This document shows positions 17,961 to 63,220 of a DNA stretch of 64,000 nucleotides, in pieces. How positions within the stretch are numbered: position 1 is the first letter of the stretch; the number at the start of each line of letters is the position of its first letter. The position numbers were made by a program, and so were the translations under genes. Under the pieces are notes generated by a model. That model saw nothing but the letters and a program-made list of their open reading frames with translations. It made no database searches and had not been told where the DNA came from. Location: the NCBI RefSeq assembly GCF_036321535.1, contig NC_087440.1:1860001-1924000 (forward strand), in the 5' to 3' direction. This DNA is from Camelus dromedarius. Lineage: Eukaryota.

Positions 17961-18120
17961 TTGTTTTTTTGTTTGTTTTTAAATTTTTTTTTGTTTTTTG
18001 TTTTTTTGGGGAAGTAGTTAGATTTACTTATTTATTTTTAGAGGAGGTACTGGAGATTGAACCCAGGACCTTGTGTATGCTAAGTATGCGCTCTACCACT
18101 TGAGCTATATCCTACCCCCC
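17961..18120 (-). mobile_element. tRNA-derived SINE (camelid vic-1-like)
   Basis: Minus strand reads ggatatagctcaagtggtagagcgcatacttagcatacacaaggtcctgggttcaatctccagtacctcc plus an A-rich tail. Confidence 0.9.
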
Positions 18121-19235: not shown

Positions 19236-19390
19236 TTTGTTGATTTTTTTTTTTTTTTGCCTTTTAAATTTTTTTTTTTGAGGGGGAGGAGGTAATTAGG
19301 TTTATTTAGTTATTTTGGTGGAGGTACTGGGGATTGAACCCAGGACCTTGTACATGTACTCTACCACTGAGCTCTACCCTCCCCTCTCCC
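19236..19390 (-). mobile_element. tRNA-derived SINE (camelid vic-1-like)
   Basis: gaggtactggggattgaacccaggacc...ctctaccactgagctctaccctcccc; flanking tttaaaaagt duplication. Confidence 0.9.
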
Positions 19391-29688: not shown

Positions 29689-29802
29689 GGGTGGCTGGGT
29701 ATAGCTTAGTGGTAGAGTGTGCTTAGCATGCACGAGGTCCTGGGTTCAATCCTCAGTTCCTAAAAACAAACAAACAAACAAACAAACAAATAAATAAATA
29801 AA
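29689..29802 (+). mobile_element. tRNA-derived SINE (camelid vic-1-like)
   Basis: gggtatagcttagtggtagagtgtgcttagcatgcacgaggtcctgggttcaatcc with A/B-box-like motifs and an (AAAC)n(AAAT)n tail. Confidence 0.92.
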
Positions 29803-30659
29803 GGAAGGCAAAGTTTTTGGCTTGAGCTGCAGGGTGGATGTTGATGCCATGTAGTGAGAAAGGGAAGACTATAGGAAGAACAGGTTTAGGGAGACTCAAA
29901 AGTTCCCACTTTGGAATAGCGAGTTTGGGAGTTTATGTCACCTCTAAGTGGATATGTTTAAGAGGCAGTTGTACAAATAGGCTTAATGCTCATAAAAAAA
30001 GGTCAGGGCTGAAAATATAAATTTGTGAATCACCAACAAATATATGGTTATTAAAATCAAGGACCAACTGATGCTACTCTGAAAGAGAGAGATAGTTTAG
30101 GATTAAGTTCTAAAGAACTCCGATGCTCATTCATTTGGGAAACATTTATGGAATCTCTTTGTATGAGGCCTGTGTAGGGTCTGGGAACGTAGTGGGAAGG
30201 CACAGGAGCTCAGGAGCTCAACCTAGTGGAGGAGCAGGAATTGATCCAGGTTTTGTGGGGCCTGATACTCTTTAAGAAAAGGAATATAAAAAACATTCCT
30301 ACAAAATTAAATCCAAGGCCATGGGAAGGGTTTGCATAGGGGAGAGATGGGCCCTGAAGTTTAAGCTTCATCAGCCCTGCAGTAAATTCTCCTTAGTAGT
30401 GAAGACAGACTTGTACAACTGATAGTTACCATACCATGTGTGATGGTATAAGTAGGTGGCGAGGGATTTAGTACTGCAGAGAGTGGACATCTCAACAGAC
30501 CAGGAAGTCAGGGAAGGCTTCCCAGGGGAGGTGATGCTCAGCTGAATCTTGAAGGACAAGCAGGGGTTGGCTGGCTGAAGAAGGGGTGGGAGAACCCTAG
30601 GCATGCATGTGTAACGGCCAAGGGAGTAAGAAAGCGTGAGGAGAGACAGTGCAGCTGCA

Positions 30660-43999: not shown

Positions 44000-44640
44000 G
44001 GAGGAGATGCGGCTGGAGCTGAGAGCACAGGTGAAAGGACAGGTGATGAGGCTGAAGCTCCTGAGGGTGAAAATGGAGAGCAGAGTGGAGGTGATGCTCG
44101 ACTAGAAGGTGAAGGTGAAGTCGAAGCAGAAGGAAAAGAGGAGGATGAAGGTGAAGGTGGCATCCAAGCAGAAAGGAAAGGAGATGACGAAGGCGAAGGT
44201 GAAGTTGAAGCAGAGGGAAGAGAGGAGGATGAAGGCGAAGGTGACATCCAAGCAGAAAGGAAAGGAGATGACGAAGGCGAAGGTGAAGTTGAAGCAGAGG
44301 GAAGAGAGGAGGATGAAGGCGAAGGTGACATCCAAGCAGAAAGGAAAGGAGATGACGAAGGTGAAGGTGAAGTTGAAGCAGAGGGAAGAGAGGAGGATGA
44401 AGGCGAAGGTGACATCCAAGCAGAAAGGAAAGGAGATGACGAAGGTGAAGTCCAAACAGGAGAAGATGGTGAAATGAAAGGTGAAACTGGAGAGCAGGAA
44501 TTCAATGCTGAATATCAAGGTGGAGCTGAAGAGGATGAGAAAGGTATAAATGGTGAAGAGGGAGGCAATGGAGGTGACAGTGAAGACAAGGGGGAGGAGG
44601 AAGAGGATGAGGAGGATGAGGAGGAAGAGGAAGACGAGGA

Positions 44641-44674
<34 letters not shown>

Positions 44675-44791
44675 AATGAGAAGCCTTTGTCACTGGAATG
44701 GCCTAAGACCAGGCAGAAGCAGGCTATTTACCTCTTTCTCCTGCCCATTGTGTTCCCGCTGTGGCTGACGGTGCCCGACGTCCGGAGGCTG
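44000..44791 (+). CDS. SLC24A1: NCKX1 coding exon 6 (792 nt): acidic cytoplasmic loop and next hydrophobic segment
   Basis: ctgcAG|GGA GGA GAT...; open frame GGDAAGAESTGERTG...PLSLEWPKTRQKQAIYLFLLPIVFPLWLTVPDVRRL; donor CTG|GTGAGT; the ORF track only shows the part from ATG 44474. Confidence 0.93.
44105..44440 (+). repeat. SLC24A1: Coding tandem repeat, 4 x 84 bp (28 aa: EGEGEVEAEGREEDEGEGDIQAERKGDD)
   Basis: Units start at 44105, 44189, 44273 and 44357. Confidence 0.97.
44594..44674 (+). repeat. SLC24A1: 27 consecutive Glu/Asp codons ((GAG/GAA/GAT)n)
   Basis: EEEEDEEDEEEEEDEEEDEEEEEEEEE; the polyacidic tract is a known NCKX1 feature. Confidence 0.95.
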
Positions 44792-45524
44792 GTGAGTTTG
44801 CCCTGCCGTGTATCCCCCGGGAGGCTGTGGGGTCTCCAGGCACTCCCGCGGGAGGTGGGAAGGGACAGGACAAGTCAGCGTGGCAGGGCTCCACCGCAGA
44901 GAGGGTCTGAGACGGAATACGCAGCCCCGGAGGGGACCACGCCCCTGGAGGGACATATGGATAGGTTTGGGAGGCCCTAGAATGCGCTTATTTCATAACA
45001 TCCACTGTAAGCAATGTGAACTAATTCCTCCTTGAATTCTGTCTCAGTTTCTTGATTTTAATATGGGGAATGGTGCCACTACACCCCCTCCATATTTCAC
45101 AGGGATATTGTGAGAAACTAGCGTGGTAAGTGCCAGCATTCCTATTTATCAGGAAAGATCTGACTAACATACTCCACCCAAAGGGGGACCATATTCTGTC
45201 TCCTGGTCAGCAGAGGGGCAAGGTGGGGAGAGGTTTCAAAAGCCAAACCAAACACCTAGATTTGTCTGGTTTTAGGACAAATAGGTCTCTTCCTTTTGGC
45301 ACCTGCTGAACCCCCTACTGTCTGGATGCTCCTATGGGACCAACCTCATCCTTCTCCAGACATCTTACGGTCCTCACTGGAGAAAGAGATCTCAGCTCAA
45401 ACATCTCCAGATCCTCTCCATCACTCCTCCAAGCATCTCGTCACTGATCCTGGGGCTCCCTCAGAAGGGCCAAAGACCTTTGGCCTCCAAAACTTATTTC
45501 TCTCCTTCTCCAACTTTCCAACAG

Positions 45525-45614
45525 GAGGCTAGGAAGTTTTTTGTTATCACCTTCCTGGGATCCATCGTGTGGATAGCCATGTTCTCATACCTCATGGTGT
45601 GGTGGGCTCACCAG
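45525..45614 (+). CDS. SLC24A1: NCKX1 coding exon 7 (90 nt, EARKFFVITFLGSIVWIAMFSYLMVWWAHQ)
   Basis: ttccaacAG| ... CAG|GTGAGT; phase 0/0. Confidence 0.97.
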
Positions 45615-45772
45615 GTGAGTGTACAGCGGGACATCTGCGGGTCAAAAGAGCTTTTCCTTCAGGAAGAATTTCCAGTACCCAGGCAATGGTGAGGACCAAG
45701 TGAATTTGTAGTTTATACATTGTTTGTAAAGGCTTAAAAGTAGACTTTATATTCCAATGAATGCAGTACTTG

Positions 45773-45896
45773 GTTTTTTCTTTGGAGGGGGTGGTAATTA
45801 GATTTACTTACTTATTTGATGGAGGTATTGGGGATTGAACCCAGGACCTTGCACATGCTAGGCAGGCACGCTACCACTGAGCTACACCCTCCCCCC
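45773..45896 (-). mobile_element. tRNA-derived SINE (camelid vic-1-like)
   Basis: ggaggtattggggattgaacccaggaccttgcacatgctaggcaggcacgctaccactgagctacaccctcccc. Confidence 0.9.
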
Positions 45897-46612
45897 GTGA
45901 GTGTGACTCTTCTGCTTTGTAAAGTATTCACACTGTAGCCTGACAGGAGGCCCTTCACAACCTGACCCAGCTGAACATTGTTAGCTTCATTCCCAGCTTT
46001 CTCTGGCCCCTCTTCTCTCCATCTGGTGACATCAGTTTTGCCTCCTCTCGGGCCTTTGTTCAGTCTCTGAGTGCCCACGGGTTTCCTGCTCTACCGGGAG
46101 CACTTTGCTGCTCTGTGCTGACGGAACTGCGGCTGCCGCTCACAGGCTTTTCTCTTTCACTAAGCGGAGAGCAGGCCAGTGTTGCACTGCTCATCCTTCT
46201 GCCTCCAGCCTCTAAAAAGTTGCTGGCGTTACAGGTGCACATGGTTCTGGAAATGGACGTGTGACGTGAACAGGCCTTTGGAGGGGCAGTTCTTTGGGGA
46301 AAGCAGAGGTGTTGTAGCTGGAATGACAGTAGGTGGTGTCATAGGTGGGCTTTTAGTCCCGTTTAGAGAAGAGCGGTGTCATTCACTGACGCCTTGAGCA
46401 GGGGCCCTATTCTTTATTCTTTCTTCTCCGTGCCCCCCCCCCCCACCCAAGGCGTTAGTTCCGCCGTGACCCTACCTCACTCAGGCCAAGGGAGTGTCAG
46501 CTCCCTGGAAGGTGTTGGCTTTGCACAAAGTAGTATGTGGTTGGTGCTTTGAAGAGGCTCAGATTTGTCACCTGCTGCTTCCAGGTTTCTCACTGCTGTT
46601 ACTGTTTACCAG

Positions 46613-46779
46613 GTTGGTGAAACAATAGGGATTTCTGAAGAGATTATGGGTCTGACAATCCTAGCAGCAGGCACGTCAATCCCTGACCTCATCACCAGCG
46701 TGATCGTCGCTCGGAAAGGCCTGGGAGACATGGCTGTGTCCAGCTCTGTGGGCAGTAACATATTTGACATCACCGTGGG
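46613..46779 (+). CDS. SLC24A1: NCKX1 coding exon 8 (167 nt, alpha-2 repeat [17 protein letters not shown])
   Basis: gtttaccAG| ... GG|GTGAGT; phase 0/2. Confidence 0.97.
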
Positions 46780-47755
46780 GTGAGTGGCAAAGTTGCTTTC
46801 TAAGGCACATTAAGTACGACTGGAAAACACTGTTGGCTGTGTGTGCTGGGTTCTTGCCGCATTCATTACACGTGGAATAAAAGGGCACTGATATGAGCTT
46901 CTGCAAGGCAATAAAGTACCCTCCCTTCATTCACCACAGCCAGATAGGATAACAGAACTGAAATGCTGCATGAAATGTAACTGACTGGAATTCACAGGTG
47001 AGTTGAAGAATGAAGTCCATTAAATTCCACTACCAGATACAGTCAAGTGCTTTGCTCACTGACCTCCAAGGTGGTGGAGGTGGGGCTGGACAGAGCAGTG
47101 ACTCACTCTCACTTCCTGATATTCCTGCTCCTTTGCATTGGGATTCCTGCCAGCCCAGAGGCTCTAAAAGCATTTTGTATAAACAAGCAAATGCCACATC
47201 CCCCTGCACAGGTTCCCTTACCCTCTCTTCCCATCTTCAGAGCAGAGCACCTGCCCTATTTTCATTTCCCCAGTCGTGTCCTGGATTTGGGTGGTGGCTT
47301 TGGTTTCTTTAATTTGAATTTGTCTATGTGTGTATTTGCAGGGTGCAGTAGGTAAAGGTGCACAGGAGGGCCCTGATTAGTACAGAATTGAAAGAGATGT
47401 TACCCTCAGCTAGGCCTTGTAATAACTGATGGAGAGGTCACAGTGTCACACATCTACCAACTTGGGTTAGTCACACCGGAGTCATGAAGTATGAAGGAAC
47501 CAAACTCAGCCCCAGAAAACCTGAGTTTCAATCTGGGCTCTCCCAGTTACTAGCTGTGAGTCCTTGGGCATGTAATTTAATTTCCTTGAACCTTAGTTGC
47601 CTCACGTGTGAAATGGAGCTGGTATTTTCTGCTCTGCTTCATAGGTTTGTGTGTACGTGTAAAAATAAGTGCTTTGAAAATTGTAAAAACACTGTGAAGT
47701 GCATGGAATTATTATCACCGTGAAGAACACTGACATTGTTTCTTCCGCCTTGCAG

Positions 47756-48005
47756 CCTGCCCCTTCCGTGGATGCTTTTCTCTCTTATCAGTGGCCTGCA
47801 GCCTGTCCCAGTCAGCAGCAATGGCTTGTTTTGTGCAATTGTGTTGCTTTTTCTCATGCTCCTGTTTGTGATCTCCTCAATCGCATTATGCAAATGGAGG
47901 ATGAACAAGATCCTGGGCTTCACCATGTTCCTCCTGTACTTTGTATTCCTCGTCATCAGCGTGATGTTAGAGGATCGAATCATATCCTGTCCTGTGTCTG
48001 TGTGA
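47756..48005 (+). CDS. SLC24A1: NCKX1 last coding exon (250 nt, ...EDRIISCPVSV*)
   Basis: ccttgcAG|C CTG CCC; TGA at 48003-48005; summed CDS 3537 nt is divisible by 3. Confidence 0.97.
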
Positions 48006-49528
48006 AATGGACAAGGATCAGAAAACCATGCCAGAAGTTACCTCTTGTTCCATTAAAGAAAGAATGAACACAATCCAGGAGAGTGAACTGAGTGGCCAAG
48101 AGCCTCGTGTGTGGATGTGACCCGGGACTGAAGTTTATCCTCGGAAACACCTGCGACTCTTTGTGGGTTAGGCGTCTCAGGAGCAGTGGAGTTCCTCCCC
48201 CTGACTGATGCAGACACCTGTCACACCGAGGCCAGTAGGAAGACCTGAGTCGAGGGTTTTCTAAATGAGATCATTGCAGGGTGAGGGATGGGACAGGCAC
48301 CATCGCAATAAGGCAAGCTCCGTGTTCACACTTCCCTGATCATCCCCGAAGGGCTGCTGACCCAAAAGATGCAGGTGTGGTCTACATGTCACCCCCGGGC
48401 CCCTGCCCCAAGCACAAGCTGCAGTTTGCTGTCTCTTCTTTTTCTGTTCAAAAAACGTAGTTCTACCAGGTTTGTATTCATTACAGATTCAGTTGTTGGT
48501 GAGTTTAAATAAGGAGCTAAGGCTACAGGAAACAAACAGGAATCACTAATCATTACACATCATGGTCCCGTAAAATGTGTACCAATGTTTTACAGCTTAG
48601 AAGGACTACATTAGCGCTCATTGTTGCGTTTCAGAAAAGTGAAATTAAAATAAGCGGCTCAAGAAGTTAAAATTTATAAATTGCCCTTGAATTGGAAGGT
48701 GTGGGGATTAGGGAAGGAAAACTACCCTGAGGACTATGTAAAACTATGTTCTTCTTAGGAGATCCAAGTTAGTGCCGTCTCCACCAGGTGGTCACCTTGA
48801 GGGACTGGACGTTCTAACAAAGCTGTCCTGGCTCTGCACCCCTCCCTCCCATATTCTCACCCAGCGGTGGCAGCTGCTACTAGTGGGTGAGAGAAAAAGC
48901 AATTTTTAGAGAGTCTAAAGTCAGTAGAGCCAAATCTGGCTTATAAAGTAAGAGATCCAGTGGGGCAATGCTATGCTATTTTTGTATGCCATCCTAGATG
49001 GGATTATAAAGCAAGAAGATTGATCCCCTGCGTGGCTTACAATTGGATATTAAGGCGATTGTTTACAAAGGAGAAATTCAAAAAATGCTTAATTAACACA
49101 AGGACAAGGTGGTGAGAAAGAGTATTCCTGCTTCCAAGGTAGCTGGTGGAAAGGACACCTGACTTTTTAAAACCTGTGTGGTTAAACGTTTCATGTGGAA
49201 GCTGAAGCGCGCGTGTATTAAGTACCGCTGTCTGCTGCTTTTACTGGCATCAAGGGGCACATTAAAATGAAACAGTTCTGTGTCACTGGTTATGGAGCAA
49301 AAGAAGCTCATGTGAATGGAACTTACAACATAAATATGGCTTTAATTACAAACATGAGAGGATTCCTTGAAGACTAGAAGACAGCAGGAAAAACCGGAAC
49401 ATTTTGGTGTTGAAGGACTACGTTCAAAGTACTTCAGGCCATGGTACGTCTTTTAAGACGGGCTGATTAATTCATGGCCTCACAATTCCAGGATTCACAT
49501 TCTTTGGAAATGGCTTTTACTAAATTCC

Positions 49529-60528: not shown

Positions 60529-60646
60529 TGTGGGCGTTCCAGAGGATGTACAAGGGCTGTCCCGGATCCTGATGCAATTTCATGTTGTCCCACAACATCT
60601 GGATTAAAACATGTTTACTATCTTCAGACATACAGTGGCGAGGAAT
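60529..60646 (-). CDS. DENND4A: DENND4A exon (118 nt, [39 protein letters not shown])
   Basis: acacAG| ... A|GTAAGT; phase 0/1. Confidence 0.95.
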
Positions 60647-61316
60647 CTGTGTTGAAGAATAAACCAACATTCATTAATGATCCTTATATGACAATGCTTT
60701 GTAAATATTTTATAAAAATCCTTACAGACATTTTGTAGGATTGTGTGTGTGCAAGAGAGAAAAGAGAAGAGAAAATGACTGACGTGCATGCATTTTACAA
60801 CCTACTGAAGGAAGACGGGCTGAGGTGAGAAGCCAGTGAGCCTCTAAAGTAGCAGATTTAACCAAGAACTGGGATGAGTGAGGAAGGGAACCAGGGAGGG
60901 CTAATCTTGACCAGTTTACGATTATGGCTCCACAGAAGGAGGAACCCAGGAGCCCCATTCTACGTCAGTTCAAGCCACCCCCCCGAAGCGCTAGGCTCGC
61001 TTGTGAAGGAGGCAGGAGACATGGGTGGGGCCGATTCACAGACTCTTCTCTAAGAGTCATTTAGTTTACTTTTGACTCTATAACAAAAACTCAAGCCCAT
61101 TTTGTGTCAATTTTGTAAGAAGTCCAAAAAATACGACTTTCTCTTACTGCTAGACTGTGGAAAGAAAAATTCCTTGCAACTGAAATAATTTTATTGATTC
61201 AGATGGTTATTAAAAATATTTAGCATAAAAATTACTTTTTGTCATTAGGGCTATGCAAACATTACAATAGTGTCAGTAGCACTGGCTTTTAGTTCATTTT
61301 TACTCTCATACCTTTG

Positions 61317-61450
61317 TTTTTTTATTTTTTATTTTTTGGGGGGTAGGTAATTAGATTTATTTATTTCTTTGATGGAGGTACTAGGGATTGAACCCAGGAC
61401 CCCATGCATGCCAAGCACACACATTACCGCTTGAGTTATGCCCTCCCCAC
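61317..61450 (-). mobile_element. tRNA-derived SINE (camelid vic-1-like) with a perfect 16-bp TSD
   Basis: TSD tactctcatacctttg at 61301-61316 and 61451-61466; head gtggggagggcataactcaagcggtaatgtgtgtgcttggcatgcatggggtcctgggttcaatcc on the minus strand. Confidence 0.93.
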
Positions 61451-61461
61451 TACTCTCATAC

Positions 61462-61716
61462 CTTTGAATACTTGTTACAATGTTCAGAAGAGAGAATCAA
61501 TCCAGGTAAATTACTGGGTAAGTCAAGACGTCTAAAATACCACACCAGGTTCCAAAAAACAATTGGATGATGGTCCACAAAATCTGCCACTGTTATTGCA
61601 TGATCGCCTTCATTTTCCAATAAGCTTTCAAGCTCCTTCCACACCACTAAAGGACTAAGATACGGAACAGTGATAGGATCTGGACTTGGGAGGTGCCATT
61701 CTAACCCTAAAGAATC
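61462..61716 (-). CDS. DENND4A: DENND4A exon (255 nt, [14 protein letters not shown]...SEHCNKYSK)
   Basis: caacAG| ... AAG|GTATGA; phase 0/0. Confidence 0.96.
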
Positions 61717-61975
61717 CTGTTGAATAAACAAAAACCATAAATGGCAATTACAATATTGATGATACTGAATGATTAAAAAACACTCCTGTCAATGATTTCC
61801 AAGTAAGTAAAAATGTAACTGTATCATGCAACGAGAGACTCTGCTCAACAGTAATAAAAATCGAAACTAAGAAGGCTGTTTAGCACATGGGGAACAAAGT
61901 CTTATGTAAATTATCAATGTCCAAATTGTAAAAACAACAACAACAACAACAACAAAAAAACACCAAAATACATAC

Positions 61976-62174
61976 TGTAGCTCCTTGTAAAGTAGCTGGC
62001 AGGCTGCCTGTAGGAATGATCTTCTGCCCTCCAGCGTCCTCCTTACCCAAGGGGCCGTAAGAACTAACACTCCTGGCCATTGGAAATATCGGACATTTTG
62101 ACATAGCTGTTTTTGATCTGTCAGCAGGGATCTGAATACTTTGTGAACACGTATTTTCCAGAAGTTTAGATTTG
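61976..62174 (-). CDS. DENND4A: DENND4A exon (199 nt, (S)KSKLLENTCS...LPATLQGAT)
   Basis: cccaAG| ... ACA|GTATGT; phase 2/0. Confidence 0.93.
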
Positions 62175-63220
62175 CTTGGGCATTGAAAAAAGAAAAAAAG
62201 CATATCACTGTCTAGATTTACTTTATTTTGTCTAGCACAGAGAATTTCTCTTTAGAATCAGAGCTAGGCACAGCCAAGTAAAACAAAGGAAAGATGCTAC
62301 TCGGGCTTCGGCTGGGAAACAGGATTTAGTTTACAGTAGTCTAGTCATGTTCAATTTCCTTTCTATCCAGTGAACTTTAAATATTCAAGAGTCACTCATT
62401 TTTATTCAAAACATTTAGCGGACAGCTTTTCATACTGCAGGAACCACAACAGGGCCAGAGGATACAAAGCAGAAAACATCGGCACCTATTCCTTCAAGAG
62501 TCAGAGCTAGTGGGAGACAGTCAGAGAAAGGGCTAGCGGACCTATGATGGAAGAAGGTGCACACACAGCTCTGCCGTTCTGCAGCCTAAGCATATTCATG
62601 ATCAAACAGGGCACCCGCCTGCCAGTATTAAGCAGGCGTTTTCCTTTTCACATTCAGTTACCACTGTGGCTTCATCTGCCCAGCTATATGCAGCGTGCTT
62701 GGCACTTCTCCAAACAGGAGTGCATTTCTGTATTTGTTTTAAGCAAAGACTTACTTATATTAGGCTTACTGTATAAACCTTAGCTTAATTTTACAGTCCC
62801 TCTATCAGTTCCAGATGTTTTCTCAGGCTATTAAATATTCCAAGGTAGAAAATTAAATATTCCAAAGTAGAAGTAAGTTAGTCTGACTTGATTCCTCAAG
62901 AGTAGAGATAGGAGAAAGATGTTCATTATGAACTTCAAGTGTTCTCCAGAATTTTTACCTTTAAAATAATGGTACACATTATCATTATGAATTATACAGC
63001 TAAAACTTTGGGGATTCATAAAGCATAAACTATTAACTGTTTAAACATTTAGGTCATTAGAGAGAATTTTAAGACTGTTTTAAAGGAATAAGAATTTAAG
63101 ATTAGGAATCTCTTATATATAAAAATTTAAACCTTAAAATGGTCAGCTAATTTTTCTGTCATTATTGGAAACACGTGCAATATATGTTGTTAAAATGTAG
63201 TTCCACATAATCATAATTAC

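Follow-up and report, generated by a model that had tools for sequence, protein, structure and literature searches.

A SINE target-site duplication spanning a 5′ splice site of DENND4A in the dromedary

Splice sites derived from the target-site duplications (TSDs) of mobile elements are already known, from canine merle and from Introners. In merle, a tRNA-derived SINE lies exactly at the splice junction between intron 10 and exon 11 of PMEL, and the original splice site is part of its 15-bp TSD; the mRNA is normal or aberrant depending on whether splicing takes that site or one brought in by the insertion (PMC7349775). Introners resemble this situation in that a TSD supplies a functional-looking splice site beside the mobile element, although they are mostly DNA transposons of protists and fungi that give rise to whole new introns and have TSDs of 3 to 9 bp (PMC9860276). 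A different precedent is provided by globin and adenovirus constructs with duplicated 5′ splice sites, in which identical tandem donors more than 45 nt apart face one acceptor; when two identical strong donors were separated by at least 45 nt, splicing went almost entirely through the intron-proximal one, both in model substrates and in cells (PMC3413131). Finally, poison exons and NMD-coupled unproductive splicing involve a premature stop codon more than 50 to 55 nt upstream of an exon junction. Regulated poison exons are used in vivo, often ultraconserved and autoregulated.

At the DENND4A locus described here, the competitor of the original splice site is an exact TSD copy of a donor, while in merle it is a cryptic site inside the SINE that depends on tail length. 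Merle, moreover, involves an acceptor and a recent antisense insertion with a phenotype, whereas the DENND4A case involves a donor and a sense insertion that is apparently old and is known from sequence alone. In contrast to Introners, a retroposed mammalian SINE has duplicated an existing donor, and no new intron was formed. The locus can be regarded as a natural version of the duplicated-donor constructs with a spacing of 150 nt, although those relied on strong consensus sites and neutral spacers, while the DENND4A site is weak (−5.7 kcal/mol) and its two copies have exchanged contexts, a real exon with a new intron start for one and the SINE tail with the ancestral intron for the other. With poison exons, it shares a stop at the required distance, which its second potential donor would add, but this donor is a sequence-only candidate, and its role as a regulated switch is unsupported. 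The reading that we favor, with a probability of roughly 0.55, is that of an old, fixed L1-type insertion whose duplicated donor would contribute few NMD-targeted transcripts, if any.

The exon/intron junction and its duplicated donor

The window, that is, the whole stretch of 64,000 nt analyzed here, carries on its minus strand (61462 to 61716) a coding exon of 255 nt with phase 0 at both ends, translated as D-SLGLEWH...HCNKYSK and preceded by an acceptor AG at 61718 to 61717. A protein homology search with the exon ORF retrieved 150 homologues, and those that bear a name are called "C-myc promoter-binding protein," including two fish proteins (P0017 and P0019) with 76 to 78% identity, while mammalian exon ORFs were 97 to 100% identical to that of the window. 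We take this name to be an alias of DENND4A, the gene of a Rab10 GEF. Among the members listed, which are 15 of the 24 in the case of the P0001 cluster, this search found solely non-camelid forms, and an exact look-up in the protein collection found neither the exon ORF nor 15 other ORFs of the window. The gene neighborhood was also considered. A convergent gene on the plus strand (44100 to 48100) has two exon ORFs with Na_Ca_ex (PF01699) domains as well as tandem repeats and a long acidic stretch rich in E and D, and looks like an NCKX1/SLC24A1 gene. In human 15q22, SLC24A1 and DENND4A lie tail to tail, an arrangement that a Na_Ca_ex neighbor fits. Both orthology and gene neighborhood point to DENND4A as the gene to which the exon belongs. 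The window also contains 713 N in several blocks between 55.9 and 57.5 kb, which are either masked sequence or gaps.

The flanking coding exons could be located by combining protein searches with the sequence itself. The 3′ part of the upstream exon (61976 to 62080, minus strand) was found by tblastn with residues 1 to 37 of P0017 and by reading the sequence, and it ends in ...GCT ACA | GTATGT, followed by an intron of 259 nt up to the exon with the SINE at its end. A T-rich (GTT)n microsatellite (61930 to 61975, minus strand) starts directly after this ACA|GTATGT donor. The next coding exon downstream has 118 nt (60529 to 60646, minus strand), with its acceptor AG at 60648 to 60647, and was found by tblastn with P0019, P0026 and P0028, with positions 60537 to 60577 masked. 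These three spliced homologues join ...SK or ...SQ straight to the exon that starts at 60646, which supports 61462>60646 as the conserved junction.

A direct-repeat search within 61100 to 61700 returned a single family, formed by two copies of the 16-mer TACTCTCATACCTTTG at 61301 to 61316 and 61451 to 61466, 100% identical and with a spacing of 150 nt. On the gene strand the 16-mer reads CAAAGGTATGAGAGTA (61466 to 61451 and 61316 to 61301) and covers the last 5 bases of the exon and the first 11 of the intron, the latter starting with GTATGAGAGTA. The upstream copy (61451 to 61466, minus strand), CAAAG|GTATGAGAGTA, remains attached to the exon and has its donor GT at 61461 to 61460. The downstream copy (61301 to 61316, minus strand) is attached to the intron and offers the same sequence as a potential donor, whose exon side would end at 61312 and whose GT is at 61311 to 61310. 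Both donors are thus AAG|GTATGA, the second exactly 150 nt downstream from the first, and the match between them extends for exactly 5 nt to the exon side of the junction and 11 nt to its intron side; with positions −5 to +11 in common, any 9-mer donor score must be equal for both. The space between the copies is occupied by a SINE of 134 nt (61317 to 61450, minus strand) that is oriented like the gene.

The exon (61716 to 61462) is one open frame with a codon boundary at the junction. Read-through past the upstream donor gives SKV*E*, that is, Val followed by an in-frame TGA at the second codon past the exon end (61456 to 61458, minus strand), which is a premature stop in any such transcript. 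The 150-nt extension contains six in-frame stops, and a coding exonization of the SINE is ruled out by them. If the distal donor were used, the exon would measure 405 nt, and 144 nt would separate the TGA from the would-be junction 61312|60646 that follows it, with more coding exons downstream; this is a formal fit to the rule for NMD targets, being above the threshold of 50 to 55 nt. The earlier note on this DNA had anticipated this anatomy, from the assignment to DENND4A and the perfect 16-bp TSD across the junction, with the SINE 11 nt into the intron, to the second donor, the GTA TGA stop of the extension and its status as an NMD target, and all of its coordinates and counts proved correct. 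It overlooked the four AATAAA hexamers located between the donors, which add intronic polyadenylation as a second possible outcome (see below).

To reconstruct the state before insertion, we used eight orthologous loci (L001 to L008), Logan contigs that carry close relatives of the exon ORF, and compared them locally with window positions 60700 to 62300. Seven of them are 83 to 87% identical to the window across the region, and the eighth (L008) varies between ~68 and 90% depending on the segment. In all eight, window segments 62299 to 61451 and 61316 to 60986 align next to each other, with an overlap of exactly 16 nt in the locus, and the contigs read ...TATTCAAAG GTA(G/T)GAGAGTA AAAATTAAC..., with one copy of the 16-mer. 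The empty site was found in contigs of two non-camelid mammals; judging by their distance (68 to 90% identity), which is too large for closer relatives, the source organisms should be outside the family of the window. Motifs of PRE-1, CHR-2, Bov-tA and Can-SINE were found in none of the eight loci. One contig, L004 (DRR658121), differs from six SRR4292xxx contigs within the intron (L004 positions 2700 to 2720) by an insertion of 14 nt and a deletion of 4 nt, and is taken to represent a different population or a close species of the outgroup in the latter.

Since these empty-site orthologues lack exactly the SINE and one 16-mer, a repeat by chance is excluded. An assembly error as the origin of the SINE or of the second 16-mer has a negligible probability as well: the order TSD, SINE, A tail and TSD is canonical, and word searches over stretches made up to ~40% of the SINE and its junctions recovered 0.73 to 0.96 of the sampled 31-mers in each of over 20 public runs, which come from at least 10 studies. 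A metagenome scan for the 26-mer of the filled-site junction gave 0 matches, a result without bearing on absence.

A 16-nt TSD, a near-consensus TTTT/AA nick and a join of poly(A) to the TSD form the signature of L1 target-primed reverse transcription. At this locus the plus-strand target is ...CCTTTG/AATACTT, with the T run derived from the tail following the CCTTTG of the downstream repeat; a TTTT/AA-like nick, a TSD in the range of ~7 to 20 bp and an A tail abutting the downstream TSD are all present. The favored sequence of events would be as follows. An L1-mobilized SINE with a tRNA-Ala-like head would have been inserted by target-primed reverse transcription at the exon/intron junction, with a first nick in the exon, 5′-CTTTG/AATA-3′ on the plus strand of the window, and a second, staggered nick 16 nt away at intron position +11. 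Fill-in of the stagger would have duplicated the segment from exon −5 to intron +11 and, with it, the whole 5′ splice site. The upstream copy would have retained its exon and gained the G-runs of the SINE head just downstream, while the downstream copy would have retained the ancestral intron and gained the A-rich tail as its upstream context. The former is the probable working donor of the conserved mRNA, and the latter a putative latent or decoy U1 site that, if spliced at all, would produce a minor isoform terminating at the second of the added codons, fitting the NMD rule.

The SINE family and the age of the insertion

The first 73 nt of the SINE (61445 to 61373) were called as tRNA-Ala by ARAGORN, and the Rfam tRNA model gave 28.6 bits (E = 4e-4), just missing the gathering score of 29. 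Of the two pol III boxes, the B box (GGTTCAATCCC) has remained intact, in contrast to a degenerate A box. The remainder of the element reads AAAGAAATAAATAAATCTAATTACCTACCCCCC, with a body of the form AAATAAATAAATCTAATTACC..C-run, and ends in an interrupted A tail adjoining the downstream TSD. Four other copies were found in the window, at 17984 to 18119 (minus strand), 19260 to 19386 (minus strand), 45764 to 45896 (minus strand) and 29690 to 29805 (plus strand), differing by 8 to 15% from the joint majority. The family thus has five copies in 64 kb, with a common body AAATAAAT..CTAATTACC..C-run, and the AATAAA hexamers are one of its features. The copy at ~45.8 kb sits within the region of the NCKX1-like gene. 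A tRNA head with A and B boxes, an A-rich tail, a TSD and dispersed copies characterize the element as a tRNA-derived SINE. SINEBase describes vic-1 as a camel SINE and groups it with the rodent ID family (PMC3531059), and a camelid vic-1 (SINE_VV) type is our lead for the junction element, by its match to this description rather than by alignment to a consensus. A study of transposable elements in Camelus lists SINEs that are almost all MIRs (PMC8605555).

The earlier note had considered the insertion young and possibly polymorphic, a claim that is not supported. Its youth is probably wrong, while polymorphism may exist beyond the best-matching runs that the word searches list. Of 102 positions compared, the body of the junction SINE departs at 14 (~14%) from the leave-one-out majority of the four remaining copies, a divergence equal to that of these copies in the window; age figures drawn from five copies are rough. 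In the word searches, ~40% of the stretches consisted of the SINE and its junctions, and a locus without the SINE could hold at most ~0.55 to 0.59 of the words. Runs of two organisms (A and B) hold 0.78 to 0.96, above this ceiling, among the best holders that such a search lists, and many studies contain the SINE. The insertion is therefore probably old and common to at least two related organisms, as far as these comparisons go.

Perfect identity of the two TSD copies had suggested youth, and this argument was rejected in view of the ~14% divergence of the SINE and the ~7% divergence of the surrounding intron. In ~70 aligned intron bases past the downstream copy, we counted ~5 changes in the lineage of the window (~7%), over a branch longer than the residence of the SINE. 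The chance that 16 free bases remain unchanged is ~0.3 at 7% divergence and 0.07 to 0.19 at 10 to 15%. The TSD is a poor clock because its upstream copy is shielded from change by serving as exon end and splice site, and because the intron has diverged by only ~7%. Selection on the distal copy, as deduced from its perfection, was likewise rejected, since the probability under neutrality (~0.07 to 0.3) is not significant.

Choice between the two donors

Which of the two identical sites is used should depend on their surroundings. The donor itself is weak to moderate, with a U1 duplex of −5.7 kcal/mol for AAG|GTATGA compared with −15.2 for the consensus. The upstream site has four G-runs within positions +1 to +100, derived from the GGGGAGGG start of the SINE and from later runs, and the downstream site has none. 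G-runs are described as intronic splicing enhancers that aid 5′ splice-site choice in two reports (10.1101/2024.10.07.617118; PMC3390395). The upstream site is also the one with the real exon behind it, while the 60 nt that would form the exon side at the downstream donor are 63% A and include 2 G. These features point to the upstream site as the main donor, and to a downstream copy that is latent or at most in minor use, a conclusion that we consider slightly better supported than its opposite. The exon protein is identical across other mammals, so a fixed insertion in a gene under such constraint should leave normal splicing largely intact.

A second explanation is that the distal donor is used appreciably, constitutively or under regulation, so that transcripts carrying the SINE and the stop would be sent to NMD and the site would act as an unproductive-splicing valve. 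We regard this as possible but rather doubtful. The donors are identical from −5 to +11, the rule established with duplicated constructs would favor the intron-proximal site at a separation of 45 nt or more (PMC3413131), and the intron flank that follows the downstream copy is the ancestral, conserved one, 86% identical to L001 over 170 nt. Predicted accessibility is slightly in its favor too, with a mean probability of being unpaired of 0.60, compared with 0.43 for the upstream copy, and the position of the stop 144 nt before the junction is what such a valve would need. The position rule, however, comes from sites with strong complementarity to U1 and depends on U1 occupancy being saturated; a weak donor may not obey it, and the enhancers lie by the upstream copy, while the A-rich tail of the SINE is on the exon side of the other. 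The extended exon would reach 405 nt, and a heavy loss of product would not be expected from an insertion that is old and fixed in a conserved gene. The distal 16-mer is perfect while the SINE body has diverged by ~14%, which could be taken as a sign of use, but, as said above, this perfection is not significant under neutrality.

Expression data were approached through the share of sampled words found in RNA runs. Three of them (X34, X17 and X18) hold about the share expected from the exon alone, while X16 (0.42 and 0.76 on two stretches) and X15 (0.56) hold ~56 to 118 words above it. This excess is RNA, or DNA carry-over, that extends past the upstream donor into the SINE. Unspliced pre-mRNA, splicing from the distal donor and transcripts that end in the SINE would each account for it, and it is compatible with the valve as well as with the 3′-end effect discussed next.

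The third explanation, in which the RNA would be affected mainly at its 3′ end instead of in splicing, concerns the four AATAAA hexamers of the sense SINE (61321 to 61365, minus strand, with gene-strand starts at 61365, 61361, 61333 and 61326). They are located directly upstream of the distal donor, ~100 to 140 nt past the exon, and this donor could be a U1 landing site that suppresses premature polyadenylation (telescripting). Sense SINEs with AATAAA are selected against in dog gene introns (PMC11699766), and protection by U1 snRNP against proximal intronic polyadenylation signals is described in two further studies (PMC5499120, PMC10404622). If suppression failed, a truncated mRNA ending in ...KYSKV-stop and immune to NMD might result, which is speculative. 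The word shares of X15 and X16 are compatible with RNA ending within the SINE. The context of the hexamers is nevertheless poor, with no GU-rich stretch closer than ~70 nt beyond the last of them; the upstream donor alone, 95 to 140 nt away, may already suppress these signals; and the hexamers belong to the SINE family, so that their presence needs no special explanation. We consider this effect quite improbable.

Under the favored reading, with the upstream donor doing the work, the locus would show that an insertion at a splice junction can be tolerated, since the exon-attached site survives within the TSD and G-run enhancers happen to come with the SINE head. It is unlikely that the TSD-born donor is a working element of the gene, either as a substantial and perhaps tissue-dependent NMD throttle of DENND4A or as a U1 decoy that silences the AATAAA signals of the SINE. 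If it were one, the locus would amount to a fixed natural experiment, with two identical 5′ splice sites competing in swapped exon and intron contexts. Use of the downstream copy in splicing would give the lineage an inherent loss of output from a conserved Rab10 GEF gene, and would provide a test in living animals of the rule that favors intron-proximal donors.

Such arrangements are expected not to be rare. As a rough estimate, five copies in 64 kb correspond to ~1.6e5 SINE copies per genome, and ~2e5 donors with 8 registers for a 16-nt TSD give, also roughly, in the order of 100 donor-spanning insertions before selection.

A variable position was also observed within the donor itself. Intron position +4 (~2861 in L001 to L007, ~409 in L008, and 61458 and 61308 in the two copies of the window) is G in L001 to L007 and T in L008 and the window. 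The U1 duplex of the GTAGGA form has −9.2 kcal/mol, compared with −5.7 for GTATGA, and it is the T that creates the in-frame TGA, which the G form lacks.
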